Shown: positions 38,901-64,000, counted from the stretch's first letter. The stretch is 64,000 nt of DNA from Diplonema japonicum (GCA_964019335.1 OZ025744.1:307709-371708), one strand, 5' to 3'. Numbers and translations are program-made. Notes: generated by a model from the letters alone, not told the origin.

Positions 38901-39273
38901 GTTAGGCGTTGTGGTGAGTGGGGTGAGTGGGAGGATAGAAAGAAACTGTGTTGGCATCACGAAAGGGGAAGGGTTTTGCAAGATTAAAATATAAAAAAAA
39001 AAAGGAAAAAGAGAAGGAGAAAAAAAAAAAGAAAGAAAAAACAACGACATCGAACAAGGTAAAGGAAAACACGCTTGTTGCTTCATTGCATTCCAAAGCT
39101 TGACAGCAGTGGAGGGCACGAAGACATATAAAAACTTAAAGAAAGAAAGAAAGAAAGAAAGAAGAGGACAGTAAACTGTCCCCCCCCCAAAAAAAATAGA
39201 AAGGGGGAATAGTAAAAAAAAAAAAGGGGGAGGAGAGACCTCAAAAAAAGTGGCCGTTTTTAGGAGAGGTCGC

Positions 39274-40315
39274 TCAGATCTCAGAGGTGCAGGGGGACTT
39301 GTTGAGGCCGCACTCGTTGGCACCCCTCTTCACACGGATGTAACCGTTCTCGCCCCAAGACGCACCCCAGGAGTTCTTGATGATCCAGTAGTCGGCGGCG
39401 TAACCAACAATGAGGACACCGTGGTCAAGGGTGCACTGCTCGCAGCAGTTGGTGAGGATACCACCGTTGTAGGTCTGCCACTTGGTGGCGTCGACGGCGA
39501 TGGAGAGGGGACCGCTGGGACCCACGAACTCGGCCATGGCCTCCTCGTTGTGTGCGATGTCCTTGTGGCCCTTGATGGTGGCACCGACAGCCTTCCCGGT
39601 AACCTCGTGGCAGAAGCCGCTGATCCCGTCACCCGAGGTGTAGGGGTACGAGGCCTCGGTCACGATCTGCCCGCTGTGAGTCTGCTGGAGCCACTTGAAG
39701 GCGTTGTCCATGAGACCACCGTTGCAGCCGTCGTCGATCTTGTCACAAGACACAAGCTCCTGCTCCGAGAGCGAGGTCAGGGTGTGCCCGGCAAGGAACC
39801 ACTGGCCCTCAATCCCACCGGTGGTGGAGAATGCCCAGCAGCTGTGTTTGTTTTTTTTTTTTTTTTTTTTGTTTTTTTTTTTTAATTCTTCTTCTTCTCT
39901 TCTCTCCATACCTTCCGCACTGAGCCTGGTTCTTCACGTGGGTCACGGCACCCTTGGACCTCCAGTCCACCTCAGTGGGGATGGATACACCGGAAGGGGT
40001 GTAGGCGGGACCCTCCTTCTCCTGAACCTGGAGGTTGTGGTACACCTTGAACTCCTCGGCGGAGAGGTCCGAGAACCTGTTCACACCGAAGGTGGCTCCC
40101 TTAGTCTGCTCCTTCTCGTACTGGGCACCCTTCAGAAGGTTCTTCGTGAAGATCTGGAACCTCCTCTCCTCCTCCGAAGCGCTGTTGTAGTGCTTGTTGA
40201 AGTCGGCCTTGAAGGTCTTGAACATCATCCTCGAGTTGGAGCGGATGTAGTCCTCAGACAGACCCTGAGCACACCCTGCGAGCAGGGCAATCATGACGGC
40301 GGTACCACAACGCAT
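39274..40315 (-). CDS. cathepsin L-like protease, copy 3; intron 39842-39911
   Basis: Same translation as copy 1. Confidence 0.96.
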
Positions 40316-41008
40316 TTTGTTGAGTTATGCTGTGTAGGGGGTAGGATGGGAACAAGAAAAAGAAATAACAGAAATTCGATTTGTGACCAGACCTAAAGAA
40401 CAAAAAGACTTCTTGCAGGATAAACACACCCCACTTATTTGCAGACATGGACGCAGGAAAGGGCAAGGGGCAGATTCCACCATAGTAGTCAACGGTCAAA
40501 GGATAAACATGCAGAACCGTGAGAAGAAAAGGTAAGGCGTGTTAATAAGATACAGAACCCACTAAAACATCCGAGAATACTTTCTTATCCTTCCTTTTTT
40601 GTTGTGCGGTGCTCGGCAGCTTCTGGGTGGGGGAAGAAGTTAAAATTTAAACAAAAAAAAAGGGGGGGGGGAAAGTTATCCAGCGCGTTGTATCCCTAGA
40701 AGGGAAATAATAGGAAAAATTGTTATCACTCCTTTTGTGCAAGAAAAGAAAAAGAGGTCGAAAGATGCCGTTAATTTTTTTTCTCCCAGTAACAATTTTA
40801 CTCCTTTTTTTAATTTTTCATAGTTTTTTTGTAAGTTGTTGCAGCAAAACAAACAACAAAAGGGGGGAGGGGGGTGTCGAAGGGGAAACAGATAGAGAAA
40901 AGAAAGAAGGGGGGACGTAGTTAGTGCATCTGGGAACTCTTACAGGGGTTCCAAGAGGAAGAAAGAATCAGGGGGTGTGGGGGGGGGGGGGGCAAAAAAC
41001 AAATATTT

Positions 41009-42241
41009 TCAAAGACTGCTCACGTCGGCGAACCGCAGCGTTCCCTGACCGCCGTTCGGGTTCGCAGGCATAAAGGTGGCGAGCCTATAGGCGGCAATAA
41101 GAAATATGGGTTCAGCTTCCGGACAGAGGGGGATCACTTCGTGCAGCATCCAGACAGCCTTGAGGCAGTGCTCCTCATCTGTCATGAGCTCTACAGCTGC
41201 GAAACACGCCTCCCACGTGACACCTTCAGGCACGGAAGGCAGACATTTCGCAAGAGCAGCATAATCACGCTCCGCCACAAGCTTTGCAGCATCACTCAAC
41301 TCTGCAATCCCAGGGAACCCCTGCGACCCGTAGGCAGAGTACAGCCCCCTTAGCCATGCGGCAGCCACCTCCGTCCTCAATCCGTACGGCAAGCCGTTCT
41401 GTGCCACCACATGGTACGCAGCCCACAACGACGTGAAGCCATGCACCACGAGGAACTCATTCTCCGTGACCACCATTGCAGTGGCCATCGTGACGAACAT
41501 GTCGTGCAAGGCAGGCAGCAGCAACGCCTCGTCCTTCGGGACTTGCACAGGGGCGTTTACGAAGGCGGGGAGGTGCTTCAGCATGGCGATCATCCTCTGC
41601 TGCCCGACGTTCGTGGGGAAGGGGTCCGACACCCGCCTGATGGTGTCGATGTCCTCCTTCCTCGCTGTGATATCTGCGTTCCACGCCAGCATGGTGGCAA
41701 CCAAGGGACTGGGCCCGTCCACGGGTTGCATTTCGTACGTGTCAAAGTCCCTCCATGTTCTAGCGTGCATGTATGCAAGGCCGTTGGCCACTGCGGTGGG
41801 CAGGCCTCCTTCGACACCCACACCAAGTTCGAGTAAAGGATGGAAGGCTGCAGCGCTTAGACCTCTGCTGACACGGGGCAGGTGCTTTGCACACACTGCC
41901 TCGATACCTTTTGCTACGGTGCCTTCGGCTTCGATGGCCTTGTGCACTTCCTGGTCGAAGTAGCCTACTAGCTCTGGGTAGTGCTCCATCATGTTGTTTA
42001 CCAGCTGTTCGGGATCACTCGCCACGGCACCTAGTTCCATGGCCTCCGTCCCTACTCGTTGGGTGTACTGGTTCGTCAATGTGCGCACCTCTCCCTCGGC
42101 CTTCCCCAATCTACTGAAGGGGACTACGATCCATGTTGCGTGGTTGCTGAGCGTCACGTTGTACTCCAATGAGCACCTGCGCTGCTCTTGCAGGAGTTTC
42201 TCAACCGTTTTTGAAACAGCAGGTGCCTTCAAATGCTTCAT
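41009..42241 (-). CDS. questin oxidase-like protein, copy 3
   Basis: Same translation as copy 1. Confidence 0.75.
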   Translation of the reverse strand: MKHLKAPAVSKTVEKLLQEQRRCSLEYNVTLSNHATWIVVPFSRLGKAEGEVRTLTNQYTQRVGTEAMELGAVASDPEQLVNNMMEHYPELVGYFDQEVHKAIEAEGTVAKGIEAVCAKHLPRVSRGLSAAAFHPLLELGVGVEGGLPTAVANGLAYMHARTWRDFDTYEMQPVDGPSPLVATMLAWNADITARKEDIDTIRRVSDPFPTNVGQQRMIAMLKHLPAFVNAPVQVPKDEALLLPALHDMFVTMATAMVVTENEFLVVHGFTSLWAAYHVVAQNGLPYGLRTEVAAAWLRGLYSAYGSQGFPGIAELSDAAKLVAERDYAALAKCLPSVPEGVTWEACFAAVELMTDEEHCLKAVWMLHEVIPLCPEAEPIFLIAAYRLATFMPANPNGGQGTLRFADVSSL

Positions 42242-42614
42242 GTTAGGCGTTGTGGTGAGTGGGGTGAGTGGGAGGATAGAAAGAAACTGTGTTGGCATCA
42301 CGAAAGGGGAAGGGTTTTGCAAGATTAAAATATAAAAAAAAAAAGGAAAAAGAGAAGGAGAAAAAAAAAAAGAAAGAAAAAACAACGACATCGAACAAGG
42401 TAAAGGAAAACACGCTTGTTGCTTCATTGCATTCCAAAGCTTGACAGCAGTGGAGGGCACGAAGACATATAAAAACTTAAAGAAAGAAAGAAAGAAAGAA
42501 AGAAGAGGACAGTAAACTGTCCCCCCCCCAAAAAAAATAGAAAGGGGGAATAGTAAAAAAAAAAAAGGGGGAGGAGAGACCTCAAAAAAAGTGGCCGTTT
42601 TTAGGAGAGGTCGC

Positions 42615-43656
42615 TCAGATCTCAGAGGTGCAGGGGGACTTGTTGAGGCCGCACTCGTTGGCACCCCTCTTCACACGGATGTAACCGTTCTCGCCCCAAG
42701 ACGCACCCCAGGAGTTCTTGATGATCCAGTAGTCGGCGGCGTAACCAACAATGAGGACACCGTGGTCAAGGGTGCACTGCTCGCAGCAGTTGGTGAGGAT
42801 ACCACCGTTGTAGGTCTGCCACTTGGTGGCGTCGACGGCGATGGAGAGGGGACCGCTGGGACCCACGAACTCGGCCATGGCCTCCTCGTTGTGTGCGATG
42901 TCCTTGTGGCCCTTGATGGTGGCACCGACAGCCTTCCCGGTAACCTCGTGGCAGAAGCCGCTGATCCCGTCACCCGAGGTGTAGGGGTACGAGGCCTCGG
43001 TCACGATCTGCCCGCTGTGAGTCTGCTGGAGCCACTTGAAGGCGTTGTCCATGAGACCACCGTTGCAGCCGTCGTCGATCTTGTCACAAGACACAAGCTC
43101 CTGCTCCGAGAGCGAGGTCAGGGTGTGCCCGGCAAGGAACCACTGGCCCTCAATCCCACCGGTGGTGGAGAATGCCCAGCAGCTGTGTTTGTTTTTTTTT
43201 TTTTTTTTTTTGTTTTTTTTTTTTAATTCTTCTTCTTCTCTTCTCTCCATACCTTCCGCACTGAGCCTGGTTCTTCACGTGGGTCACGGCACCCTTGGAC
43301 CTCCAGTCCACCTCAGTGGGGATGGATACACCGGAAGGGGTGTAGGCGGGACCCTCCTTCTCCTGAACCTGGAGGTTGTGGTACACCTTGAACTCCTCGG
43401 CGGAGAGGTCCGAGAACCTGTTCACACCGAAGGTGGCTCCCTTAGTCTGCTCCTTCTCGTACTGGGCACCCTTCAGAAGGTTCTTCGTGAAGATCTGGAA
43501 CCTCCTCTCCTCCTCCGAAGCGCTGTTGTAGTGCTTGTTGAAGTCGGCCTTGAAGGTCTTGAACATCATCCTCGAGTTGGAGCGGATGTAGTCCTCAGAC
43601 AGACCCTGAGCACACCCTGCGAGCAGGGCAATCATGACGGCGGTACCACAACGCAT
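42615..43656 (-). CDS. cathepsin L-like protease, copy 4; intron 43183-43252
   Basis: Same coding sequence; unique upstream region beyond 43692. Confidence 0.96.
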
Positions 43657-47981: not shown

Positions 47982-50381
47982 TCATCCCACATATGGTGGC
48001 AGGTCTAACTCGTAGTTTTTCAAGTGTCCTGGACTCAGGCGAAGATAGAAAGCTTTCTGCATAAGCTGTTCGTACACCCACTCCTGCACAGGTGTGAGGC
48101 GGCTTCTGTCCACAGCGTAAACGGCTTCAGGGATCTCTTCATTGCAGTTCGGGATACCTTTCAGCTTTCTAAAAACACCCACAAGGGGGTCCGAAGGGCT
48201 TGTCTCCAAGGAGTACATCCATTCTTCGTTCTCGCCTGTCACAGAACCGTTTGCTTCGCAGATGATGGTCGCCTGCGCTTCATTCAGAACCAGCCCTACT
48301 GCAGCGGTAATGATTCTTCCCTGCATCACGTCGGCAAGCTTCAACGGCAATATAACTATAGGCATGTCCCTCTTTTGCACGAAGTACTCGGCAGCCTTGT
48401 ATGCCACCTTCAGAGCACAAAGCGGTGTTCCCATCATTGCGAAGCCTTTGTTTACACTGTTCCCTATGTTCCCAGCCTGCATCATGCCGTGTGTCACCCC
48501 CGCCCACCCTACCAAGCCCGAGGTCTTAAGCAGGTCTGCACATACACACGCCTTGTATAGGGCGTCGCTGCAGTTCCCCGCTATGCCCCATGACAGGTAC
48601 AGGACATTCGGGTCTGTGAGGGTGTACGTGTGCAGCACGCCCTCTGTCTTTTGCAGTTTCTCTTGGATGATCGAGATAGTCTCTGCGAAGGCGGGGCACA
48701 ACAACTTCCCTCCCTCGTGCCTCAAGTACAGCTTCAGCAACGCACCCTTCATGTTGTTCAACCCTACATTCAGACGGGACTTCAGGTCGCCTGCAGCTTC
48801 ATCCCTTTCCCTTCTGCTGACCCTTCTACTTCGGGTCTTGGTACTCCTGCCAGACATGTCGCTGGTTCGCTCAGTCGACGTGCCCCCTGACTCGACTCCC
48901 TCTATGAAGAGGGTGCTCGGAAGGTACGCCTTGTACTGGTCGAGGACGTTGCAGGCAAACAACAGCCCGCTTGCCAGGTGCACAACCTCTGTCACGCTCA
49001 CTTTACGTACTGCCACCAGAACACCCCTTCGTGCACCCTCAATGTCCATTGTTGTGAGGTGGGAGGTGGAATCAGCAATCTGGGACACAGGCACGACGAC
49101 AGTGACGTATTCCAGTATCATCACAGTGAGGTCGCAACACAACACGACACAACAGAAAATAATGAGGAGCACCAGTGCTGCGTTGATCTGGTCCTGCACC
49201 ACGCTGGTGGACTGGATCCACAAGATGATGGCATCGAAACGGGTTGCGTTGAACCCGTCGTCCAAGGTCATCAAGGTCTCCGTCCTGACGAAGTGCTCCC
49301 CACCTTTAATGCCCTTTTTCCAGAAACCAGGCCGTTGTTGCCCTACTGTATTCCACGTGCCGTGCATCTGCGAGTCGTTCACCAGATGCATGATGCAGTG
49401 CTGCTTCTCCTTCAACGCGTTCCTGTCTGTCCCCAGACACGGCCCGTCGAGAAGTTGCTGGCCCGTTGAGGTGGCGTACACGATGCCTGACAGCGCGTCG
49501 AAGATGACGACCTTCGTGTTTGAGGTGCGCTCTGCGTATGACTGAAGGGCTGCTTCCCACTGGTAAAAGAACCATGCCGCCTTGATGCCGACGAACTTGT
49601 ACTTTGACCAAGGATGGGGTGGGGGTGGCGCCATGTACCACGTATCGACGTAGATGTAGATGAATGGCGTCAGGTCGCCTGAGAGCCATGCCTCGGGCCT
49701 CTCTGCACATGACATGACCTTTGACCCGGGTGCTCCCTCGGCACTCATGTTAGGGTGGCATGTCAGCTTGCTAACCTCAAGGTCGAAGTTGTAGTTTTCT
49801 TTAACGATGGTCCCATTGTCGGGTGTGACGCCAAAGACATGCGCCTCAAGTCCATGGCCGTGATCATGATTCTGATTGTAAAGAGCCTTGACGTACTCAA
49901 CACCACCATCCTGTAGGAGGTCTTTCCATGTGTGGTAGTAGAAGAGCGCAGGGTCCTTGGGATCGTGGGGGATTGCCTCGATACCGATCTCGTCAATCCA
50001 GTAGGACCACCTCACACGTGGCCAAATGGCCCACTCGGCAGAATCCGCCCACGACTCCACGTCCACGCTGTCTGCACTGAGAGTTCCGTTTGGGTTCAAG
50101 GTGACAGGATGTTGTGCATCAAACCTTTCCCTTATCAGGGTGTTCATCTCTTTTTCAACCTGCTGGACTTCGTCGATGCATGACCTAAGTTCCTTTCGGA
50201 GTCCTTGCACCTGTGCATCAGACACATCCTCTACCACACCTTCCAAGGACTTCAGCGACTCGAAATACATCAGCAACCCCCCTAGCAGCGACAGTGTGGT
50301 GCTCATCGCTGTTGCACAAATAAGTAAATACTGCAGTTTCACCTTGCATTTCGCCTTCTGATCCACAAGGTTATCTTGCAT
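47982..50381 (-). CDS. receptor-type membrane protein with degenerate class III nucleotidyl cyclase domain, 799 aa
   Basis: TM, extracellular domain, TM, HAMP-like linker (V.EV..L...L..YKAYLP), cyclase-like GVTHGMMQAGNIG...GFAMMG, NEEWMYSLE. Metal-binding Asp motifs not seen. Confidence 0.75.
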   Translation of the reverse strand: MQDNLVDQKAKCKVKLQYLLICATAMSTTLSLLGGLLMYFESLKSLEGVVEDVSDAQVQGLRKELRSCIDEVQQVEKEMNTLIRERFDAQHPVTLNPNGTLSADSVDVESWADSAEWAIWPRVRWSYWIDEIGIEAIPHDPKDPALFYYHTWKDLLQDGGVEYVKALYNQNHDHGHGLEAHVFGVTPDNGTIVKENYNFDLEVSKLTCHPNMSAEGAPGSKVMSCAERPEAWLSGDLTPFIYIYVDTWYMAPPPPHPWSKYKFVGIKAAWFFYQWEAALQSYAERTSNTKVVIFDALSGIVYATSTGQQLLDGPCLGTDRNALKEKQHCIMHLVNDSQMHGTWNTVGQQRPGFWKKGIKGGEHFVRTETLMTLDDGFNATRFDAIILWIQSTSVVQDQINAALVLLIIFCCVVLCCDLTVMILEYVTVVVPVSQIADSTSHLTTMDIEGARRGVLVAVRKVSVTEVVHLASGLLFACNVLDQYKAYLPSTLFIEGVESGGTSTERTSDMSGRSTKTRSRRVSRRERDEAAGDLKSRLNVGLNNMKGALLKLYLRHEGGKLLCPAFAETISIIQEKLQKTEGVLHTYTLTDPNVLYLSWGIAGNCSDALYKACVCADLLKTSGLVGWAGVTHGMMQAGNIGNSVNKGFAMMGTPLCALKVAYKAAEYFVQKRDMPIVILPLKLADVMQGRIITAAVGLVLNEAQATIICEANGSVTGENEEWMYSLETSPSDPLVGVFRKLKGIPNCNEEIPEAVYAVDRSRLTPVQEWVYEQLMQKAFYLRLSPGHLKNYELDLPPYVG

Positions 50382-50819
50382 TATTTCCTGTATTTGAGCA
50401 TGCGGAAAAAAGAAATGGAACTGAGAAAGAAAAAGAAATGGGACGGAAAAAAGAATAGCTTGTGAAAGCAGTCCAAAAAATAGCTAATAGAAAAGGGAAA
50501 CAAATTGACCTCAAACTGCACAGTGATGCCGATGTTGCTCAGCATGCTAGCAGTTTTGCCCCTTGGCAATGATGAGGCCGTGGAGTGTATTTTCTTTTTT
50601 TTTTTTTTTTTACATATTTCCTATGCCAGGGGTGGTCGTTCCGTTCCCTTCCACCAAACTGGAAAGTCGGAACTTGGCGGAACCAGCGGAACCGGAACGA
50701 AGCGGAACTTGGTGGAACATGGCAGAACAGGGAATTCCTTACCTTTTTTTTTTTTCTTCTTCTTTTTTTTTTTTTTTTTTCTTTTCTTTTGGGAAAAACA
50801 CTGTTCACGGTAAGCAAAT

Positions 50820-53620
50820 AACTTTCGCAATAGAAGTGGTCAAAAACACCTGAACAGTGATATTTTACCTCAGAAAAAAAGGTTTTTTTCACTAAGGGTA
50901 CCTATACTAGGCCTAATAATGATCCATCTGTCATTTTTCTCTCCTTAATAACTTACCTTTCTCATTCTTTGTATTTCCCCCCTGTTTTTACTGTACTTTA
51001 TTGGCAGGTTGTTTTAAAAAAATAACCTAACCCAACAAGACACTCCAATAGAACCAGAAAATCTGTCAGAAAAGACTACCTGATAGCCTACCTTGGGTGG
51101 GCTGGGGGGGTGGGGGACAAAAAAAAATTTTTTTTTCCCAGGGGACCCCAAACTTGGGGTCACTTTGGCCATTTTTGACCCCAAAATTTTTTTTCTGGAA
51201 AAAGCCAGAAATCATGAAATTTATATTAAAAACACCTTAAAAACCCATTTCTGCAAACCAAAAAGTTCAGAAAGGTGTTTAGGTGGAATACACATCTCTA
51301 AACTATATTCTGAAGTAAAAAGTAAGTAAAAATCTGAAAATCTCAGGGGGGTAACTCATCCTCATGACAACACTGGGAGGGCAAAAAATAATTTTTTTTT
51401 GAACACCCAATTTTGTCCCAAAAATGGAATTCTGAACAGCCAATGGAAAGTTTTAACCCCACTTGGACTGAAAGTTTTTTTTCAAAAATCACTTTAGGAA
51501 TTTTCCTTAGGGTCTAAATGGCCACCTGAAAATCACAAAATCAAGCTTCATTTTAGAATGGTATTTTTGGAATTTTAGCCTAATTTTGGGTGATGATAAG
51601 CAAAATTCCCCTTGAAGTAGGTTTCCCAGCTGTGGTTATCTAATCGAATTTTTTTTTCTTCAAGGAATCAACTTTCTTCTGAAAATTTAAGATTCATATT
51701 ATTCTAGCACCTTGTAATGAAGGGTTAGGTTATTTTTTAAAACAACCCACCAATAAAGTACAGTAAAAACAGGGGGGGGAAATACAAGAGGTCCTAGGTT
51801 TGGGTGGGATGTGAGGCAAGGCTCATACTACCTTGTTGTGACTATGTAAAAAAGAAAAAAAAAAAAAAAAAAATTAAAAAAAATGTCAGGGGGGGTTTGG
51901 AGACCTGCTTTGAAAAAAATATTAAAAAGAGGCCTTTGCAAGAAAAGTACAAAGCAAAAAAAAAAAAAAAAAAAAGTAAAAAAAAGGGATGCAGTGCTGG
52001 CCAGACTGGTGGTCTGAGGGGTCTGGCCCACAAACCACCCCAACACCGCAAATTTTCGACACACATGATGTATGCAACACAGGGTGCACAACACAGCACG
52101 TGTTTTATAACATGGAAAAGCAGGTGTCACAATGCACCTCTTGGTGCACAATATACAAAAGGAAAAAAAAAAAAAAAAAAAAACTTTTATCTTCTTTTTC
52201 AGGTGGTGGGGATAACATGAAAATATAAGAAAAACATCAGATGTGTTGTTCACTGTTGACCTCCTCATCTGTCATCACTGAGCAAAGACACATCACAGAA
52301 TCTTAGTTACCTGTGGTGCCCTGGCTGGGGTTGAGCTGAACACCACACACATTAAGGACACAACACAGAATGCAGAAGAAGCTACAACCCAGCTGTCTGG
52401 CCATTGTGATTAAGGAAATGACACGGAACACAAAAAGCTACAACTCAGCCATGGTGATTAAGGACACAATGCAGAACACAGAAGAAGCTACAACCTGGCT
52501 GTGGTGGTTAAGGAAATGACACGGAATGCAAGAAGTTACAACCTGGCTGCAGTGATTAAGGGCATGATGTGGAATGCAGAAGAAGCTACATCCTGGCCGT
52601 GGTGATTAAGGAAACGATGCAGAACACAGAAGAAGCTACAACTCGGCTGTGGTGCACCCCCTGTAATCAAGTAGACAGTTCTTGTGCAGGGTGCTGCCAA
52701 CACCAGCCTCCTTTAACTCATATATTTATCTCCTTTCTATTATTTTCAGGTGGGGGGGGGATAACATGAAAATATGTGCAACAAACAGGCAGTGCAATGC
52801 AGGGGTTGATCTGTACATTGCACATTAGGGCATGGTGCTGAAAGCAAGGAACCGATCTGTTTACACAGGTTGTATAAACATACCCTCCTCTTGTACATAT
52901 TATTTACTATTTCCCCCCTTTTCTATTACATCCAAATACAACATTTGATGCAGAAAGTAGAAACAACAGCTTGGCTTAGGTGTGTGATAAAATGTGAGAA
53001 GACAAGAAAAAAAGAAGGAAAAAAAAAAAGGTAAACACATCATGTATGTCAAAAAGAAAATCAAGGATTTTTTTCTCTTTTTTTTTTCCCCATTTTTTTT
53101 TTTTTCCAAAGAGAAAAAAAAAAAAAAAAAAAAGTTGCAAAACTATCAAAAATAATGACAGTGTTGGGGAGAGTCCTGTGAGTCCCATCAAGTCCCATCC
53201 CGTGGAGTCCTGTGAGTCCTGTCCAGGCCTGTATTCTGTTTTAGGGGATGGGATGGGACTGACCAACACTGCCCATGACCATCTCACTTTCACTATTAGC
53301 CTCATTAAGGTCTAGAAATGGTATTTTTGAGGGAAAAAAAAATTTGAGAAAAAATCAATTTAAGGGTGTTTTTGGGAGGAAAAACAATTTTTTGGACACT
53401 ATTTTTTTTTTTTTTTTCCAGCACCCCATGCGCCCAATAAAGTACAGTAAAAAAAAGGGGGGTAAATACAAAGAATGAGAAAGGTAAGTCATAAAGGAGA
53501 GAAAACCAACAGATAGACCATTACTAGGCCTGATATAGGTACCCTTTTAGAAAAAAATCAATTTTTCTGAGGTAAAAAACCACTTTTCAGGTGTTTTTGA
53601 CCACTTGTTCATGTGAAAAA
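50820..53620. mobile_element. degenerate element bounded by ~190-bp inverted repeats (50820-51005 and 53432-53620), partial third arm 51720-51790
   Basis: AAGTGGTCAAAAACACCTGAA..TTTTACCTCAGAAAAA..AAGGGTACCTATA..CTTACCTTTCTCATTCTTTGTATTT..TTACTGTACTTTATTGG recurs as its reverse complement. No ORF inside. Confidence 0.75.
52351..52654 (+). repeat. minisatellite, 6 x ~48-58 bp
   Basis: Units start at ~52351, 52409, 52457, 52507, 52555, 52605. Inferred consensus ATTAAGGACACGACGCGGAACGCAGAAGAAGCTACAACCCGGCCGCGGTG. Confidence 0.9.
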
Positions 53621-53954
53621 TAATTTTTTTTGGGCACCTTTTTTTCCCCCCCAAACTTCTCACTTTCACCCCACTTCACTAAAGGCCTCTATTAAGGCCT
53701 AGGATAGGTACTTTTGAGAAAAAAAATTTTTTTTTTGGAAAAAAAACAATTTTTGGGTGTCTTTGACAACTTTTTTTGGGTAGAAAAAAATTTTTTTGGA
53801 CACTATAAAAAAATTTTTTTGCCCCCCCACCCCCCTGGATTTGCCCCCCCATGCCCCCCTGAAAATCTCAGGGGGGCAACCCATTCTCATAACAACACTG
53901 ATCCCAGAAGCCAGCATCTTCCTGACCAGTAGTTCAGCCGAAAATATTTTTGAA

Positions 53955-54030
53955 GGTGTAATAGTCTAGTTGGGGGGGCTTTGCCCTGTACCTAGGCAAA
54001 GCAGGTTCAAGCCCCACTCCAGTGGATTTT
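53955..54030 (+). pseudogene. tRNA-like remnant or SINE head
   Basis: A-box TAGTCTAGTTGG (53962), stem-loop GCTTTGCC-CTGTACCTA-GGCAAAGC, B-box GGTTCAAGCCC (54004). No proper acceptor stem. Confidence 0.35.
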
Positions 54031-54811
54031 TTAAGGCTCCCCACAGGAGAGAAACAGCAGCCTGAACCAGTGTTTCCACAAAAGCTTTTCGTAAGCTTGT
54101 GGGAGTCTAGTTGAAGAAAAGTGCAGTTTTCAGGGAAGGACAGAGATATTAAAAGATGGTATTCCATAGGGAAAATCATCCTCAGACTCTTTCTACATGG
54201 TTTTATCCACAAGTTCATGAAGCTATCTGGTAACCCATATTAAACTGACTCTATAACCTAGTTATAGAATACTTCATCTTCTCTAAGCTCTTTCCACATG
54301 GTTTAATCCACAAGTTCATGAAGGTTGTTGGTAACCTATTTTTAACCTATTACTAAAAACTAGGTTGGGATTTTGTAGGGAAACTTCTTTATAATCGTAT
54401 TAGTATTACACTTTTTTGTATATCTAGGAAAAAAAAAATACTTCAAGAAAGAGATAGCTTAAACTGTCTGTTGAGCAAGGCCCCAAGACGTTCATACCCC
54501 TGTGTTGTTAAAGTCATACCATCTGCATTGTACACAGTGTTGTTTGCAACCTCTGACAGTCAGCAATAAACAAAGCATCAGACATGTACTATCAATGTAT
54601 AGAAACCATGGATCGTCTGCAATAGAGGCTTCAGATACATCTTTTATGATAGGAGGGATAGCTATCATGGTGTAGTATCCAAGTCCTTTTAGAGCTGTAA
54701 TGTATTGTTCAAGTGAGAGAAGGGTTTCTGTAACACATGTAGCACTGTTTAGCAAGTACTTGTGTCTCAAGGTTACACCTAAACCAAATTGATCAATATG
54801 TTTGTCTTAGC

Positions 54812-55680
54812 ATGTGGTTTGTGGTGGTCAAGTTGCAGACCCAGGGGTGCAGACACCACCCAACACTGGGGAAGGAAGGGGTAGCAGGCATTGTGGTGGG
54901 AGCCAGCACTACCAAGGTGACACTACATGAGTTCTTGGAGAGGTGCAATGCAAGGATAAGGGCCCCAGTGGGAAAGGTCAAGGACCTGATCAAAGTGAAG
55001 GCGTGGGTGAGGGATGGAAGGAAGGTCACCCTCGACGTCTACGAGGGGAGGGGGCCCTGTGAGAAGGAGACGAGGCACACTGTCCAGGACCATCTGCAGA
55101 AGATGGGTGTTGAAGAGGTCAACCTGCAGTCAGCAGTGGTGATGGTCCTGGGGTTGTTCAAGGATGTCTCCTTTGAGAGGTACCTTGGGCTGTTGGCCCA
55201 GAAGAAGGAGGAAGACAGGGAGAGGTGGCCTGAGGTGGTTGCCATGGACCTCCCCACCCTGGAAGAGCTGAAGTGGAGCAAGAAGGACAAGAAGTGGGCC
55301 CAGGCCCGATCGGCCAGTACTGACTCGGATTGTGTGGAGGGTGGCTACATCTATCTGAAGGGTACGGGGGCGGATGGCACCATGGTCGAAGCCAACATAT
55401 GCAGGGGTGAGCTCAAGGGGATGACTGGGCCCCAGTTCAAGTTCTTGGTGGAGCACAGGTTGATGGAAGAGCTGGGGAGCAACGACCTGGTGTGGGACAC
55501 AGTCAAGGTGCGCAACAGGGAGAACTGGGCCCTGGTGAACAGTGTGGTGGCTTGGCTGCAGCTCGAGTTGGGGAGGGCACGGGTGGGGCCCATACCCCAC
55601 AAGAAGAGGTCCAAAGGCTTGCTGGCCAGATAGGCCAGTGGGGGTGTGGGGGGCTGGTCCTGCAAACCCACAAACCCGCA
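54812..55680 (+). mobile_element. 3' remnant of a divergent related retroelement (273-aa ORF to TAG 55633, plus 3 decayed CCCGCAAA units)
   Basis: IRAPVGKVKDLIK..DGRKV..EG..P..T..MGV..GL..FERYLGLL aligns by eye with LRARPGDRLLK..EGRV..EG..P..T..LGV..GL..VKQYFASL at the C-terminus of the downstream element. Ends CCTGCAAACCCACAAACCCGCA (55659-55680). Confidence 0.55.
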
Positions 55681-55899
55681 TTTTTTTTTTTTTTTTTTTT
55701 TCTGTTTTTCTTTTTCTTTTTCTTTTTGGAGTGGAACCATCTCAGTCGACGTTTTTTTTTTTTTTTTCTTTTTTCTTATGTGGTGATGTGTTTTTCCTGT
55801 TTTTGATTTTCTTCTTCCCCTGCTCTATGCTTTTTCGCATGGACATTGGTCACTCTGCCCCTTTCCCCTTTTTTGATTCTCCCTCTTTCCCCCTCCTAA

Positions 55900-58800
55900 A
55901 TTTTAGGAGGAGGTGACTGCAGCTGCAGCCGCAGCCCACAGGAGCAAGCCCGCAGCCCACAGCATGCGCTGAGACCCACCCAACCAGGCAATCTGGTTGG
56001 GCAGTATGAATCCCCACCCCCTAGATCCCCCCACCCCCCTTTAGAAAAAAAAAATAATAAAATAAAAAAATCACTAGCAGAGACTGCGGTTTTGACCGCT
56101 GCTGCTACAACCACGGCCGCCCCAGCCGCCCTGAACACCGCAGCCGACCCTGCTGCCCTGATCGCCGCAACTGAGACCACCACAGCCGCCCCTGCTGCAG
56201 CCACGACTGCCGCGACCACGACCCCTGCAGCCGACCCTGCTATTGTTGAAGAGGGAAGAAAAGAGGGAGAAAAAAAGGGGTGGGTACTGGTGTATGGTGA
56301 ACACCCTCCCGGGTTGAGGACGGGCCTGGCCCCTGCCTTCCTGAAAGCCCTGCTTTCAGGAAAGTGGGAGGCCCTGTCTGGGAACTCAGGGAGGGAGACC
56401 CTCCAATATGGGTACCGGTGGGAGGGGACGAACGCCAAGGTGCGCCCCACCATGGGGATCCCAGGGGGGGCGGAGGGGTGGGTGAGGGAGGTGGCCGCCG
56501 CCGCAGGGCTCGAGGTGGTCCCCAACCAGGTACTTGTCAACAAGTACAAGTCTGGTTGTGGGATTGCCGCCCACAAGGACGACGCGAGGCTGGGACCGAT
56601 TGTCCTAGTCCTCTCGTACAGAGCCGAGACCACAATGGTCATGAGGAGGGGGGACAGGGTGGTGAAATACCTGGTGCCCCCCTTCTCATGGGCATTGTTG
56701 GAAGGTGAAGCGAGACACCAGTGGACGCACCACATCCCGTCCGGGATGTCCACTGGTGTCAGGGTGTCGATCACCCTGCGTGTGGTAGGCCCCAAGCTCA
56801 CCTGCACACCCCAGGAAGACCCATCCCCTGGGTTAACAGACGAACCCCCTTTTTTAGATCCCCTTTTTTGTGGGCAAGGGGGGGTGGCACTCCCAAGAGA
56901 GGATAGTGCCCCACCCGCCCCCTTTTTTTTTTTAGAACCCTCTTCGGAGGAAAACAGACCCTCTTCGGAGGAAAATAGAGAGAAAGGGGAAGAGGTGGCA
57001 CTCCCGAGAGAGGGTGGTGCTCCTCCCCCCCATTTGTCCCCCCCTTTTTCATTTTTAGAGCCCTCTCCAGAGGAACCCTCCACGGAGGTAAAAAACAGAC
57101 CCTCTTCGGAGGAAAACAGAGAGAGAGGGGAAGAGGTGGCACTCCCGAGAGAGGGTAGTGTTCCTCCCCCCCATTTGTCCCCCCCTTTTTCTTTTATAGA
57201 GCCCTCTCCAGAGGGACCCTCCACGGAGGTGAAAAACAGACCCTCTTCGGAGGAAAAAAAGGCAGAGGGAGAGACAGCACGCACGAGAGAAGGTAGTGCC
57301 CCTCCCTCTCTGCCCCCCATTTTTTCTGGACCCTCTACGGAGGTGTACACCCTGGTCCCCAAGGGCCGGGGGCTTTTTTTGAGGGTGGAAGGGAAAGAAA
57401 AAAAAAAAACAAACAAGGAGGAACCTTTTTTCTTTTCAAACAACCAGGGGGACCCAGCACCCACCCCCACCGCCCACCAAGGTGTGGTTGGGGCGGAGGC
57501 TGCGAGCGACGTGAGAGCACCACTGCACACCCTTGTGAGAAGACAGAAAAGAGCCCCCTGGATTGCCATGGGTGGCAGGGAACCTAAGCCAGCGCCCAAG
57601 CGGAAGAAGAACAGGAGGAGGCACAGGAGCGAAACGGCCCTTCAGAGGCGTCGGGAGAAGAGGACCAAGGCGAGGGAGGGGGCGAGGGAGGCTGCCAGAC
57701 AGGAGAAGAAAAGGCACCGTCGTGCGAGGAAAGAAGGGAGGAGGAGGGCCCGCAGAGAGGAACACGAGGCCGCCCTGGAACAGAAGCCAGATGACCCTGC
57801 AATGGGGCTGAAGCGGACCGAGGTGGGAACGCCTGGAGCCCAACCCCTGGCACCCAGAATCCCGGCACCTGGGGCTGCAACCGGCACAAGGAGGCACCGC
57901 AGACGGACGGGACACAGCAAGGAAGGGGTGAGATGGGAGCACCTGGGGGCGTGGGCCTGGGTCGCCCTGGTCTCCCTCTTGCTGATCCCAGGGGTGAGGC
58001 AGGTGCTGGGGGCGGGCATCGGGATGGCCCCCTCCTTCCTGCATGCGGCAGTGTTGTGGAAGAGGCCGGGGAGCGACAGGAGGACCACCCGCAGGTCAAG
58101 GGTACAGGTGGGGCCCCGAGGGGATGAATGGTCCGCCGGGGAGCTCGCTTGGCTAGCAGTAGGGGGCACTCTGGTGGGAAGCACTTCAGTTTGGATAGGG
58201 GGGCTGATGTCGCTCTGGGCCATGTCGGAAGTGATGGTGGGGAAAGCTGGTGCTGACCCGACCCAGAGATTCGGACCGGTAAAGCTGAGGAAGACAAGAC
58301 GCGGATCGAGAGGTCACTACCTGCCGGTGTACTTGGGCCCGCCTAGAAGCTCAAGACGCAGAAAAAAGAAGGAAGACGCCAAGCAAGCGGCGAAGGAACG
58401 AGCCGAGACGGAGGATAAGCTCTTTCAGGCCGAACACCTGGACCCCTTTGCGGACTTGACGCTGGCAGGGGACGCGTTGCAAGGAGGTGGTGACCCTCCC
58501 CCCATGGATTTGGATGATGAGCACACGGAGGCGCAGAAGGAGGGGGAAAAAGAAGGAACAGACAAACATCAATGCCAGATGGAAGGCTGCTCTTTCCGCA
58601 CCAGTGTGGCAAGCTGTCTAGTTAAACACCTCAATGCGGTCCACCATCATTTTGTGAAACAAGAGCAGGCGAGGAACATGAAGGTGAACCTCTGTGGAAC
58701 GTGTGCTGTGGCGTGCTCGTCGAACCAGACGCACTGTGCACTACACAGGCAGCGGAATCTGTGGAACCCCGACAAACAACCCAGGGCCGGCAAGTCAGTG

Positions 58801-61800
58801 GACGAGATCATGAAGAGCTTCAAGCTGACGAGGAGATCGACGGAGAAGGACGGGAACTGCATGTTCCACGCCCTGGCCGGTTCGCTCGGGGAAGCCTACG
58901 GGGACCACACCCACATCAGGAGCGAGGTTGTAGAATGGATGAAACACCGGGAGGAGCACTATGCCCCGTTTTGCAGCGAGGGTTGGGACCGGTACTTGGA
59001 AGGGATGGGCACAGCGGCGACGTGGGGAGACCACTTGTGCCTGGCAGCCGCAGCACAAGCGTTTGGCCGCACGATACTCGTGGTTGCTGGGGGGAACAAC
59101 CCAGTCCTGATGATAGGGGAGTACAACTCCGACCACGAGAAGGTGGTGGTGCTGGCGTACAACGGCAACCACTACGAGTATGCAGTCGGAGAGGAGGAGT
59201 CGATGATGATGCTCCTTGATGAGTCCCAATCGGTTGCTCTACAAAAGGCAGGTAAGCAACCCTCCGAGGCCCCGGGTGAGGACATCGGGGAGTGGGACAT
59301 AATAGACCGTGCGATCCCTGGGTACGGGAAGGCAGGGGTGTTGGACCAGATGGGGGCAAGGAACCAACAATTCCTGTACTGTCCGGTGGCGAACTGCGCT
59401 AGGTCGAAGTGCAAAAGCACGACCCCGTTCAACTCGACAAGGGTATGGAAGTGTCACCTGGATGGGCACCTGGAGAGTGATGAGATCCCGGAGAGCGTTC
59501 TGAGGAGACTGGACCTCGAGAGGTGCCTGGTGTGCAGGGGCTGTGTGTGGAAGGGTCAGGGGTGCCACGACGAGTGCAAAAAGGCGGTGCGAAGGGAAGG
59601 GGAATACACGACCCCCCCGCCGGCCCCGACGAGGACCGAGTTACCCAGCCTGGAAGCCATAGCCGCCATGAACGTCACGACCATGGGGTCGATCCCGACG
59701 AGCCTTCAAAGACTGTGGGGGCTTACCCTTAAGCACACTCTGGGCCGGGCGGTGAAGGACAACACAGAGGAGGCTTGGCTGCTGGTGGCGATGCTCCCCA
59801 AAGCCTGCCTGTGGAAGAAGAGGGGAGGGAAGAAGCGGGACAAGGAGACGGAGCTGAGTGTCCAGGCCAGATTGGAGGAGTGGGAGAAGGGAAATTACAT
59901 GGCCCTCTGGAATAAGCTGGAATCAGGTGAGAAGGGGGAACCTAAGAACGACGAGGTCTCTAAAGTCGCCAGGGCCACGGAACTGTGCAGCAAAGGGAGG
60001 TTCTCGGCAGGAAACGCGGCGCTTGTAGCCCAGGGGCTGGCGGAAGACAATGAGGATTGCTGGAGAGCGCTGCAGAGCAAACATCCAGAGCCACTACACC
60101 CCCAATGGGACAACCCGGCGAAGACGAAGGAAGCGGTAGAAGTCTTGCCAGAAGAAGTGCTGGACGCAATCAGGGACTTCCCGAGGGGGACTGCTGCGGG
60201 ACCGACTGGTCTGAGAGCCCAGCACATCAAGGACGCGGTGGACGGAGCTTTTGAGTCTCAAGGCTGTTTGATGTCGGTGACGAGGGCAGTCAACGCATTA
60301 GCTAGAGGCACGGCCCCTAGGGAGGTGGCTCCGCTGATGGCAGGGGCGAACCTTGTGGCCCTCAAGAAGAACGACAGGGACGTGCGGCCCATAGCCGTTG
60401 GGGATGTGCTGCGTCGGCTGGTGGGGAAATCCCTTGTGAAGAAGATCGCTCCGGAAGTGGCCTCTTCGTACCTGAAGAAAGGCGGCCAGGTGGGGGTATC
60501 GGTCCCTGCTGGAATGGAGGCGGCTATACACACCATCAGGCAGTATGTGGACAGGGAACGGGGCAACAAGCAGGAAAACAAGGTGATCCTCAAGATCGAC
60601 TACGCCAACGCCTTCAACAGTGTTTGTCGGAGGCAGCTGTGCTCACAGGCCTATGAGCAAGCGTCGGGGCTGTATGCGTGGGCCGATTGGTGCTACAGGG
60701 TGCCCTCCCAATTATACTACAACGGAAAGGTGATTAAGTCCCAGGAAGGGGTGCAACAGGGGGACCCGATGGGACCGCTGCTGTTCTCTCTGGCCATCCA
60801 ACCCCTGGTGAACAAGATAAGTGAAGACTGCAACCTGGACATCCTCCAGTTCTACCTGGACGATGGCGTCCTTGTGGGGAATGTGGATGAAGTGAGAAAG
60901 GCGTACAACATCTTGTGTGAGCTGAGCGGAATGATAGGGCTGAAAGTGAAACCCCAGAAGTGCGAGCTCATATGGGTTAGTGGCGACCTCCCCCAGACAG
61001 TGGAGGACACAGGCTTCGATGGCCTGACAGAAGAGAATTTCCACAAAGAGAGGAACTTCATGCTCCTGGGGGCGCCGATAGGATCGCCGGAGTACACGCA
61101 AGCCTTTCTGAACAAACGCTTGGACGCGCTGGAAGAGAACTTCGACATGCTGACCAAGGTGGGGAGGCAGACAGGGTACACACTTCTCCGGTATTGCAGC
61201 TCATACAGCAAACTGGTGTTTTACATGAGAGTGGTCCCAGACTCGCATGTGGGAGGGGTCATGCACAGGTTCGACGAGATGGTGCGGAAGACGATGTCGA
61301 AGGTGTGCGGCATGCAGTTCGAGAACGGGTCGAAAGAATGGCAGCAGGCGAAACTGTCCGTAAAAGTCGGTGGGCTTGGGATGAGGAGCTGCCAGGAGCA
61401 CCTGCGCGCGGCCAACATGGCTTCGAGGGCGTCGACGATGAAGCTGTGCAAGGAGCTGGATCCCAAATACGAACATGGGCTGGAAGGGGGTGTATGGGGG
61501 AGCTGGCTCGAGTGGTTCAACAGGACGAAGGGCGGCATGCAGATTACACCCGACATGGTGGCCAAGGCCCCCCACATCTGCAGCCAGAGGTGGCTCTCTA
61601 GGGTGCTTGATGAGAAGGCGCTGGAGGACCTCTTGGCGAAAGCAGATGCACGCTCGAGAGCGAGGTTGATGTCGGAGTCAATGCACTATGCGGGGGCGTG
61701 GTTGACGGCGACGCCTGACTTCTACAACCAGCTGTCGGACAACGAGTTTGGGGCTCTGATCAAGTGGTGGTTGGGGGCTCCGGTCTACAAGCAGGGTGAG

Positions 61801-63548
61801 AGCTGCCACGACCCGAGGTGCAAGACTGAGGGGATGGACGTATGGGGTGACCATGCCCAGGGATGCGGCAACGCCAGGATTGCGAGGCACGACCGGGTGA
61901 AGGAGACCATCCACAGACACTGTCAGTGGGCCGGGGTGAGCGCAACGATGGAGAAGACGGGGCTGATCCCGGGGTCGTCCCAGCGCCCGGCGGACGTGTT
62001 CTTCCCAGGTGGGGTGGGGGGTTCCCGCCCAATGGCTATGGACGTGGTCATCGTGCACCCGAGGAACGAGTCTTGTGTCAACCAGGCGGCGAAGACTGCG
62101 GGGTACGCAGCGGCGAAGGCGGAACACTACAAGCGCCAGAAGTATGAGGCGGAGCTCGCCAAGACACGCGTGGCCTTTGTACCTTTCGCGATGGAGACCT
62201 TTGGGGGGTTCGGGGAGGCAGCAGTCTACCTCACGAAGAAACTGTCCAGGAGCATAGCTGCGCGGGCTCACGGGGACAGAGTCTCGATACACAGGCGTGT
62301 GGTCCAAGAGGTGTCAACGGCCATGATGAGATCGATAGCAGGGGCGCTGTTAGTCAAAGGGCCTGTACAGTTGGATCCAGGGCCCCCGGTACCGGACGGC
62401 GAAGAGGAAAAAAAGGACAACGAGGAAGCGAACAACGAACCCAACACTGAATCCAACACTGACCTCACAGAGGACTCCTTCGGCAATGAAAAAACCACCG
62501 AAGCTGAGGAGTCGTCCGAGAGGGAAGTGAAGGGACAGGGAGGCGGACCCCCAATCACGGTGGCCCACCAGCTGGATGCCCTTCTGGAGCAGACGAAGAA
62601 GGACCTGGACGCCCGAATGCAGCAGCAGCGAAAGGCGGAACCGGTGGAGGGTGGAACACAAGGGAAAGCGGGAGCAGGACTCGAAGCAGCCTCGCCGGGA
62701 GGAGAAGACACGGAGATGGCCGGAACAGGATCCAGCGAGAGGGCTGGGCAGGGAGGGGAGCTTGACCCGAAGGCCCAGGAAGATGGGAAGAGACAAGGGG
62801 CGACTGACGCTGCGGTGAACCAGACCTTGGACCAGTGTCCTAAGGGGGATACGGAGGCCCAGAGGGACTCGAACAAGGGGGACCAGAGTGCGACAACTGC
62901 TACGAGGAAGATGACCGTGAGCGAATTCTGTAGGGAACAAGCTGCGAAGAGACAGGGCGGTGGGAGGACTCTGAAGCCGCAGGCGGATGACGCCCCCGAA
63001 GGGACCAAAGAGGGCGGGAACGCACCGAGCGGAGGCAGCCAGTCGGGGCCTGACACACCTAGGGGTGGGATCCAGACGCCGGAGGGAGATCAGCTGATGG
63101 GAGTCGGGGCACCGGAAAGGGAACAGCAGGTGGAAGTAGGGGGAGACTTCGTTCAGCTTGACCCGATTGATGTGGTGATGGGCATCCCAATTCCGAGAGC
63201 GATGGTGCCACTGAGGGCGAGGCCGGGGGACCGACTGCTCAAGTTCATCATCCAGTTCGAGGGCCGGGTGGAGATCATCCTTGAAGAAGGAACGGACCCT
63301 GGAAGGGAGAGGACTGAGGAGATGCTTCTTGCGAAGGCCGAGTCGCTGGGTGTTCCACTGGAGGTGGCTATGGCTGGCCAGATTGGTATCGCTGGACTTG
63401 GATACATGATGGTTAAGCAGTACTTCGCAAGCTTGGAAGGTGGGTCGGGCGGAGAGCGCCGCAGCCGCATTGTTGTGAGGTGCAGGAGTCGGAAACATAC
63501 CGCGAGTTCGAGTTCCCGAGGACGGTCCAGGATTTCCAGATCACGTAA
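55900..63548 (+). CDS. retrotransposon polyprotein, ~2550 codons: AlkB, 47-aa repeats, ZnF, OTU, ZnF, RT, CCHC, RLE, C-terminal extension
   Basis: Hand-translated frame +1 has no stop after TAA 55897-55899. AlkB NQVLVNKY..GIAAHKD (56572), WTH (56728), RVSITLR (56761). C2H2 CQMEGC..HLNAVH (58573). OTU DGNCMFHAL (58849), WGD, NHY (59167). RT TAAGPTG, RPIAVG, KIDYANAFN, GVQQGDPMGP, YLDD (60853), LLGAPIG, GGLG. CHDPRC..H...C, RHD, RPAD (61984), K..KY, PFAMETFG. Start codon unresolved; probable native stop TAA 63546-63548 lies in the -1 frame. Confidence 0.92.
56883..57340 (+). repeat. coding tandem repeat, 141-nt (47-aa) unit, ~3.5 degenerate copies
   Basis: EVALPREGGAPPPHLSPPFSFLEPSPEEPSTEVKNRPSSEENRERGE, units starting at 56992 and 57133 with partial flanking copies. 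Confidence 0.85.
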
Positions 63549-64000
63549 CCCGCAAACCCGCAAACCCGCAAACCCGCAAACCCGCAAACCCGCAAACCCG
63601 CAAAACCCGCAAACCCGCAAACCCGCAAACCCGCAAACCCGCAAACCCGCAAACCCGCAAACCCGCAAACCCGCAAACCCGCAAACCCGCAAACCCGCAA
63701 ACCCGCAAACCCGCAAACCCGCAAACCCGCAAACCCGCAAACCCGCAAACCCGCAAACCCGCAAACCCGCAAACCCGCAAACCCGCAAACCCGCAAACCC
63801 GCAAACCCGCAAACCCGCAAACCCGCAAACCCGCAAACCCGCAAACCCGCAAACCCGCAAACCCGCAAACCCGCAAACCCGCAAACCCGCAAACCCGCAA
63901 ACCCGCAAACCCGCAAACCCGCAAACCCGCAAACCCGCAAACCCGCAAACCCGCAAACCCGCAAACCCGCAAACCCGCAAACCCGCAAACCCGCAAACCC
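63549..64000 (+). repeat. (CCCGCAAA)n / (TTTGCGGG)n telomere-like array, at least 56 units, runs off the window
   Basis: Perfect 8-mer repeat except for one extra A near 63602. Confidence 0.98.

Follow-up and report, generated by a model that had tools for sequence, protein, structure and literature searches.

The right end of a 64,000-nucleotide (nt) stretch of Diplonema japonicum DNA (GCA_964019335.1 OZ025744.1:307709-371708; hereafter the window, the right end of which is also the end of its contig) raises the question of why a retrotransposon would encode, in one frame with its reverse transcriptase (RT), what appear to be an AlkB demethylase and an OTU protease. Translation of 55900-63548 on the plus strand gives 2549 codons without a stop, in agreement with a preliminary description of the sequence, in which a stop-free frame of about 2550 codons was noted as missing from the track of open reading frames (ORFs). 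No stop interrupts the frame in the terminal array either, as far as base 64000, which brings it to about 2700 codons overall. It is absent from the ORF listing because it lacks an in-frame ATG before codon 185 and runs off the end of the window. Three Pfam domains, each above its curated cut-off, are found in it (2OG-FeII_Oxy_2, OTU and RVT_1), and the motif coordinates given previously for AlkB, OTU, the fingers, the RT and the restriction-like endonuclease (RLE) were all exact on recheck. The RT (YLDD) and RLE motifs do share one frame with AlkB and OTU, and the single ORF reads, in order, AlkB, basic linker, zinc finger, OTU, zinc finger, RT, CCHC knuckle with RLE, and a variable tail. The parts of this frame are:

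55906-63546, plus strand: main copy of the element, frame intact, truncated at both ends
56281-56790, plus strand: AlkB-type 2-oxoglutarate (2OG)-Fe(II) dioxygenase domain (Pfam PF13532)
56951-57306, plus strand: 141-base-pair (bp) coding tandem repeat, 2.5 copies, in the low-complexity basic linker
58573-59469, plus strand: C2H2-like finger, OTU domain and second Cys/His finger (Pfam, alignment to PDB)
60364-60975, plus strand: RT core, with YLDD at 60853-60864 (Pfam RVT_1)
61804-62145, plus strand: CCHC zinc knuckle and restriction-like (PD-(D/E)xK) endonuclease (family profile against R2)
62146-63546, plus strand: family-specific C-terminal region, cut off at 63546

The domains of the polyprotein

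The AlkB domain is recognized by profile score, ligands and fold. PF13532 matches residues 161-294 (E 1.1e-10; 42.5 bits against a cut-off of 31.2), and scores 39-51 bits across three families of the element, termed A (that of the window), B and C. The motifs VNKY (NxY at 56536), HKDD (56572), WTHHI (56722-56736, with the His at 56728) and RVSITLR (56761) together span 56536-56781 and contain the iron ligands HxD...H and the 2OG ligands NxY and Rx5R, which do not vary among six sequences of four families. In the PDB the best match is human ALKBH8 (E 8.5e-8); the segment aligns to a homologue from S. pombe as well, and HxD and the second His fall in register. The neighbours in protein-language features are PF13532 clusters and small PF13532 proteins of algae and giant viruses. 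An AlphaFold2 (AF2) model made from six diverged copies has a mean predicted local distance difference test score of 71 (80-90 in the core), and the Foldseek PDB matches listed (ranks 1-49, probability 1.00) belong without exception to AlkB, ALKBH1/2/3/5/6/8 or NMAD-1. The intact AlkB motif set claimed earlier is hence borne out by Pfam, by the ALKBH8 alignment and by AF2/Foldseek, and the domain is a predicted demethylase.

This domain is old and under purifying selection. Between two family-A lineages, its 170 codons carry 33 synonymous and 21 non-synonymous differences (synonymous divergence, dS, 0.31; non-synonymous divergence, dN, 0.058; omega 0.19; binomial P 4e-8), a value of about 0.19 being the answer to a dN/dS comparison across copies proposed in the preliminary description. 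The linker is weakly constrained (dN/dS 0.66-0.94), and for OTU three of the four copy comparisons that were informative give 0.07-0.24. AlkB is present and stop-free in 14 of 14 loci with a full-length match and occurs in every copy long enough to reach it, as well as in diverged families. It had been considered that other copies might lack the AlkB segment; this came out otherwise, and AlkB is not a one-off fusion. In sequence carrying a different organism label, an AlkB segment of about 94% identity differs in length solely by indels of +3 and +6 nt, both in-frame. The genome contains at least 120 AlkB-like matches, nearly all near contig ends and falling into identity classes of about 95, 83, 78, 68 and 52%. 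Host AlkB-like genes are at most 36% identical to the AlkB of the element, and a recent capture is therefore not indicated.

The OTU domain (PF02338; residues 984-1089, E 5.2e-12, 46.8 bits against a cut-off of 23.3) spans 58849-59178, from the catalytic Cys in DGNC (58849-58860) to the catalytic His in NGNHYE (59161-59178). C2H2-like fingers at 58573-58647 and 59395-59469 flank it on both sides, so that the intact OTU set with fingers described earlier holds. Its PDB matches are OTUD5 and OTUD3 (E about 1e-5), with the catalytic Cys and His (NHY) aligned, and both residues are kept in families A-D, in the Diplonema relatives and in relatives from the ENA. Catalytic residues and profile score together make it a predicted protease or deubiquitinase.

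The RT match (RVT_1, residues 1489-1692, E 2.5e-16) is followed by the endonuclease motifs CCHC (61804-61866), RHD (61885), RPADV (61984), DVVIV (62041) and K..KY (62116-62145). A profile of 30 relatives, running from RT to endonuclease, aligns with solved R2 proteins over two stretches, the RT (E 1.6e-25) and the knuckle plus RLE (E 8.4e-6, 9nl3), with CxxC..H..C, RH(D/N), (K/R)P(A)D and DVxV..K in register with the R2 knuckle and RLE and with the profile columns C669, C674, H685, C689, H697, E718 and D748 invariant. This match, with its motifs in register, identifies the element as an RLE-type retrotransposon without long terminal repeats (non-LTR), and an RT followed by CCHC and RLE in one ORF is the arrangement of the R2 group (R2, R4, CRE, NeSL, HERO). 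The automatic SLACS name of the closest named relative, a Diplonema protein, hints at a possible kinship with CRE/SLACS. The region after the RLE has no Pfam match, and no similarity was detected in it between families A, B and C.

Complete copies and chromosome ends

The genome searched (62.5 Mb, 132 contigs) contains at least 20 copies about 99% identical to that of the window, and these allow the window copy to be read correctly. A complete copy consists of a spliced leader, a 5' untranslated region (UTR), an ORF of 2,802 amino acids (aa), a 3'UTR of about 700 nt, poly(A) and the terminal repeat; its frame starts with an ATG (MDPRR...), passes the equivalent of 63547 by about 300 codons and ends with TAG. 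Taking the window copy for a complete polyprotein gene, with a stop at 63546, the element end at 63547 and an 8-mer array as the element's own tail beginning at the stop codon, would be wrong. The TAA at about 63546 is out of frame, position 63547 is a truncation point capped by terminal repeat beyond which full copies continue, and the array belongs to the chromosome, being the terminal repeat that caps a broken copy; a microsatellite tail of the element is ruled out by the approximately 300 codons, 3'UTR and poly(A) that full copies add. The window copy is in fact dead, truncated both 5' (spliced leader, 5'UTR, ATG and the first approximately 7 codons are missing) and 3' (about 300 codons, 3'UTR and poly(A) are missing). 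A contig of the independent run X1 carries ATGGATCCAAGACGACTCGC (the missing ATGGATCC...) directly upstream of the equivalent of 55906. Truncation of the 5' end at insertion is the simpler reading of how the main copy lost its ATG, loss through an internal deletion having been considered instead.

The main copy is the outermost part of a stack, consisting of the end of an old decayed copy, a 3'UTR fragment and the doubly truncated copy, in that order. The remaining parts are:

54823-55633, plus strand: older copy, 5'-truncated, last approximately 270 codons and TAG (55631-55633), CpG-depleted (tblastn)
55634-55662, plus strand: first 29 nt of the 3'UTR of the older copy (alignment of post-stop sequences across loci)
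55663-55680, plus strand: approximately 2.25 telomere-type units (caaacccacaaacccgca) separating stacked copies
55681-55905, plus strand: T-rich 3'UTR fragment of the element, ending ...CCTAAATTTTA (identity to other loci)
63547-64000, plus strand: terminal repeat (AACCCGCA)n, 56.6 units, to the contig end

Residues 2534-2802 of the full-length protein match window 54824-55630 with 89% identity (tblastn), and the DNA of the older copy (ORF 54812-55633) is 95% identical to the 3' end of the ORF in other copies. A separate SINE-like (short interspersed nuclear element) unit, the '834-bp unit', was ruled out, as it is this 3' end of the ORF. The fragment at 55681-55905 is 93-98% identical to post-stop 3'UTR segments at other chromosome ends, where its sequence runs on as 3'UTR. 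CpG is depleted in window 50001-55656 (observed/expected 0.23-0.25, against 0.65-0.85 elsewhere), with TpG/CpA in excess, the value for the older copy end itself being 0.23. Depletion extends over the old truncated copy as well as some 4.8 kb of AT-rich DNA on its proximal side, and this composition suggests methylation-driven decay beside the chromosome end.

The 5'UTR of complete copies is 35-190 nt long and is headed by '(AACC)AACGATTCTAAAGCTACAGTTTCTGTACTTTATTG', which we take to be the 39-nt spliced leader of diplonemid/kinetoplastid type. The leader is preceded by unrelated chromosomal DNA, by telomere-type units or by the previous copy's truncated 3'UTR. Leader-headed loci are L003, L005, L006, L007, L008, L028 and L031, together with the interior sites L032-L041, and the 33-nt core of the leader, with 215 occurrences in the genome, heads other dispersed retro-copies too. 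In one copy (L005) the leader is followed by a relic 'TTTCTGTACTTTATTG' half-leader, left when the AG of the leader itself was used for trans-splicing a second time, and this relic records repeated cycles of trans-splicing and retrotransposition. Downstream of the TAG follow the T-rich 3'UTR of about 700 nt, 27-bp tandem repeats, a poly(A) of 5-45 A and the terminal repeat. The 27-bp repeats (TCTCAAGTCCCCCTTTTTATTTATTT) vary in number and lie just before the poly(A), as in L016:1690-1880 (C37 right end), L020 and L031; an internal A-run is found upstream of them. A conserved 'GAAGTGGAACCATCTCGGTCGACG' was tried as spliced leader and ruled out, being present solely in the 3'UTRs of the element. 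The spliced-leader head and poly(A) end mean that the template was a mature trans-spliced, polyadenylated mRNA, and variable 5' truncation is a further mark of copying through RNA.

Besides family A, the genome holds family B (10.66-kb tandem unit, C24/C33) and family C (C18), all three with 2OG-FeII_Oxy_2, OTU and RVT_1 above the Pfam cut-offs in one frame, and a fourth family with OTU-RT and an AlkB-like stretch just upstream. Between families, identity is 54-72% for AlkB, 56-58% for the RT, about 40% for the knuckle plus RLE, 27-33% for the OTU region and not detectable for the region after the RLE. Comparisons of L006 with L018/L019 and of L007/L008 with L028/L031 show the elements to be mosaics with older 5' modules. 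Copies with AlkB at dS 0.31 are nearly identical (dS < 0.02) over the 3' two-thirds (3' 6 kb), and some family-A copies have a 5'UTR and N-terminus (MDPRRNVVGD...) in common with family B. The mosaic sequences suggest template switching or recombination between families. The 141-bp repeat of the linker varies in number between loci, with fewer copies in other copies of the element. Internally truncated family-A units lie in tandem with a period of 6,021 bp at G000:C99:342376-359076, and family-B units with a period of 10,659 bp at G000:C24:6245-28099; recombination, besides insertion, probably contributed to the growth of these arrays. In independent public runs, with at least two organism labels, the element is present at 99% identity or more.

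Nearly all copies are located at contig ends (minus strand at left ends, plus strand at right ends), and at most of these ends they form head-to-tail stacks whose 3' ends point outward. Matches to the element and to its AlkB lie, with few interior exceptions, no more than a few kb to tens of kb from a contig end. End location, adjacency to the repeat (with junctions at both 5' and 3' ends of the element) and uniform orientation are the features of a telomere-targeting element. Many contigs end in (AACCCGCA)n, always in the same polarity, reading 5' to 3' toward the end (seen at C1, C3, C4, C5, C13, C31, C37 and C75; L013-L017), which is the reverse of a canonical telomere. Outermost copies have their 3' ends cut off and capped by the repeat in variable phase. 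No TTAGGG repeat was found anywhere in the genome, and a literature search on the 8-mer returned primer-like coincidences only. A telomerase candidate is present (Telomerase_RBD above cut-off, 1,086-codon frame, G000:C41:533974-534300).

Relatives and known systems

In a library of 1.84 billion proteins, 18,369 representatives match the RT-RLE module at E <= 1e-3. The closest is a transcript of Diplonema ambulator (63% identity), followed by a D. papillatum cluster (45% identity) automatically named 'Retrotransposable element SLACS 132 kDa protein'. The AlkB segment is matched by none of the top 150 of the 18,369 representatives. AlkB is not a general need of this RT lineage, since it is missing from the closest outside relatives, those of D. 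papillatum and of an ENA genome. Protein searches by word index, with the stretch from AlkB to OTU and with AlkB alone as queries, gave no matches, probably owing to low complexity and divergence, and a scan of metagenome contigs of the Joint Genome Institute (JGI) with the AlkB alignment found no relative. In the data examined, AlkB is confined to the lineage of this genome, where it predates the split of the families. OTU by itself is not unique to the element: relatives elsewhere have OTU (P0062), Ulp1 (P0150) or UCH (P0254) domains; going by these domain matches, ubiquitin-like hydrolases are recurrent acquisitions in this RT lineage. The 'SLACS-like' D. papillatum models are of the same RT lineage. 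The long ones (P0271, 3,379 aa; P0267) match OTU weakly at the corresponding place ahead of the RT; in these models AlkB is missing, and a C-terminal UCH-type deubiquitinase is present instead. The genome paper of D. papillatum states that transposable elements were not rigorously analysed.

Like the CRE-clade elements SLACS, CZAR and CRE1/CRE2, the element has a single ORF with N-terminal Cys/His fingers and C-terminal CCHC and RLE, is site-specific and has a euglenozoan host. Unlike them, it has an ORF about twice as long and contains AlkB and OTU, which are not reported in the clade. The classical trypanosomatid trait of insertion into spliced-leader RNA genes is not seen either: the complete leader occurs at the 5' end only and derives from trans-splicing, whereas the 3' end adjoins the terminal repeat, which is the target. 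Dfam places MoTeR1, GilM and GilT in the CRE clade, of which fungal and Giardia members target telomeres (PMC10088271). SART1/TRAS1 of Bombyx, MoTeR1 of Magnaporthe and GilM/GilT of Giardia resemble the element in being restricted to chromosome ends, in their uniform head-to-tail arrays and in their long 3'UTRs. In SART1, the poly(A) tail adjoins the telomere repeat, with the 3' end outward. GilM/GilT differ in that reverse transcription proceeds toward the end and terminal copies are 5'-truncated (PMC5537684, PMC10999387), whereas here the 3' ends are distal and terminal copies 3'-truncated. The element differs from the telomeric non-LTR elements also in the flanking repeat, which is C-rich on the 3'-ending strand, and in AlkB and OTU, unreported in those.

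Outside the non-LTR elements, the replicases of the Flexiviridae (Tymovirales) carry AlkB and then OTU upstream of the polymerase (PMC544882), which bears out the parallel to plant viruses drawn in the preliminary description. These are plant viruses with an RNA-dependent RNA polymerase, and the absence of a detectable sequence relationship beyond family level points to convergent acquisition of the domains. In Phalaenopsis orchids, a Ty3/Gypsy retrotransposon has its own AlkB-family enzyme, an ALKBH5-like protein which binds RNA and demethylates N6-methyladenosine (m6A) in vitro (PMC9289625); that case is recent, limited to one plant genus and found as a separate extra ORF of an LTR element, whereas here AlkB is fused N-terminal to the RT polyprotein of a non-LTR element. 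Cysteine proteases of ubiquitin/SUMO-hydrolase type are fused to transposition proteins in several other groups, OTU in Helitron/Helentron and Ginger1 and Ulp1 in NeSL and Utopia (PMC4640811, PMC2836005, PMC6431247), which differ in protease family or transposon class, and none of which pairs the protease with AlkB. A literature search found no description of an AlkB-bearing non-LTR element, in keeping with the earlier statement that no CRE/SLACS element with AlkB and OTU was known. The AlkB-OTU-RT-RLE layout, which is known elsewhere from plant RNA viruses in the form AlkB-OTU-polymerase, thus appears new for non-LTR elements in the literature searched.

A possible role of the accessory domains

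The interpretation that we consider fairly probable is that of a chromosome-end-targeting RLE non-LTR retrotransposon, related to CRE/SLACS and copying itself via its mRNA, in which AlkB would clean the element's own RNA and OTU would de-modify or process the polyprotein. The endonuclease would nick the T-containing strand of the terminal repeat, and the resulting ...TT-3' end would pair with the poly(A) tail and prime reverse transcription. The substrate of AlkB, acting in cis, would be the 9-10-kb RNA of the element itself or else the RNA/cDNA intermediate, from which it would strip methyl groups that block or mark the template, such as N1-methyladenosine (m1A) and 3-methylcytidine (m3C) lesions or marks of m6A type. 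Reverse transcriptases are blocked by both m1A and m3C, for the removal of which AlkB is used ahead of cDNA synthesis. OTU may remove ubiquitin-like modifiers from the protein or ribonucleoprotein of the element, cleave the polyprotein, or both. Counter-silencing or self-repair may be what the two domains do, and plant flexiviruses appear to use the same two-domain arrangement. A more specific version, in which AlkB would strip blocking or silencing methyl groups from the spliced-leader-capped mRNA while OTU would escape ubiquitin restriction, in a diplonemid-like protist with a non-canonical chromosome-end system whose C-rich repeat strand ends 3', and with the flexivirus-like module acquired independently, can be offered only tentatively.

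Several observations weigh against the interpretation of a cis-acting AlkB in an end-targeting element. By profile comparison, no AlkB is found in the longest D. papillatum and ENA relatives, and the window copy itself is unable to make an intact AlkB, as it has no ATG before codon 185. The TM-scores of the Foldseek matches are only 0.4-0.5, and the best sequence matches (ALKBH8 and the S. pombe protein) do not single out one subfamily, nor therefore one substrate. The C-rich AACCCGCA strand ends 3' at every end examined, which no standard model explains, and the nicking and priming steps are drawn from few 3' junctions, some of which carry extra nucleotides.

One alternative explanation is that AlkB, and perhaps OTU, is a passenger, a captured fragment of a host gene which is no longer functional. 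Accessory domains do vary among relatives (OTU, Ulp1, UCH or none), which shows frequent gain and loss, the Diplonema relatives lack AlkB, and individual copies have damaged motifs, such as HKYD or the loss of the OTU cysteine in L020. However, the dN/dS of 0.19 (P 4e-8), the invariance of all cofactor ligands in three to four families whose RTs have diverged to 56% identity, a conservation of AlkB equal to that of the RT and far above that of the linker or C-terminal region, and the distance to host AlkB-like genes (at most 36% identity, no recent capture) make a mere passenger very improbable. That the frame is chimeric, an assembly or annotation artefact joining unrelated genes in repetitive DNA at a contig end, is next to impossible, as the same frame recurs at dozens of ends, in three diverged families and in contigs of independent public runs.

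The remaining alternatives concern what a functional AlkB and OTU would do. If OTU were mainly a cis protease freeing AlkB or the N-terminal part from RT-RLE, and AlkB acted on DNA (1mA, 3mC or 6mA, at the target site or in the cDNA), the length of the polyprotein (about 2,800 aa, with long low-complexity linkers between modules) would make sense, related elements have Ulp1 in the same position (P0150), as in NeSL, where it has been proposed as a polyprotein-releasing protease (PMC4640811), and the structural neighbours include the DNA-repair AlkB, ALKBH2 and ALKBH3 beside RNA enzymes. No cleavage site was identified, however, the sequence-nearest solved homologue (ALKBH8) acts on tRNA and the viral and orchid precedents are RNA-directed, so that this division of labour is rather unlikely. 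A little less likely again is that the arrays represent a domesticated system of chromosome-end maintenance, in which AlkB and OTU would serve telomeric DNA or chromatin and not the replication of the element. Elements with fixed outward orientation at most contig ends, the absence of TTAGGG from the genome and the unusual polarity of the terminal repeat speak for it, and telomeric non-LTR elements of Drosophila and Giardia have been discussed in such terms (PMC5537684, PMC10999387). Against it stand the telomerase candidate, the capping of broken copies by simple repeat and not by new elements, an orientation opposite to that of end-primed elongation, and the several competing families, many truncated and CpG-decayed copies and few interior copies, which have the look of ordinary selfish turnover.

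The remainder of the window and the host genome provide the setting. Long same-strand ORFs at 4.4-29 kb of the window are apparently intronless and typical of polycistronic euglenozoan clusters, three ORFs of 551 aa at 34329-42664 (minus strand), spaced 3,339-3,341 bp, form a tandem gene array, and no RNA family was found in the window with Rfam. Elsewhere in the genome lies a single gene of the Tet_JBP family (G000:C20:468781-469245, minus strand; 147 bits, 897-codon frame), which by its family membership is consistent with base-J-type thymine hydroxylation in the host. This gene, the dense arrangement of long ORFs on one strand, the spliced leader and the Diplonema affinities of the element all fit a host that is a diplonemid-like euglenozoan.

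Non-LTR retrotransposons are commonly regarded as encoding no more than RT, endonuclease and nucleic-acid-binding modules. A selected demethylase fused to the RT suggests that methylation of nucleic acids, be it damage or epitranscriptomic, limits retrotransposition, and that the element itself counters this limit. The independent occurrence of the AlkB-then-OTU order in plant RNA viruses points to a solution that serves long RNA-templated replicators in general, an idea testable with two small, expressible domains. The spliced-leader heads provide an unusually clear sequence record of an mRNA-to-DNA life cycle, and the chromosome-end setting with its odd terminal repeat ties the element to the telomere biology of a major and little-studied group of marine protists.

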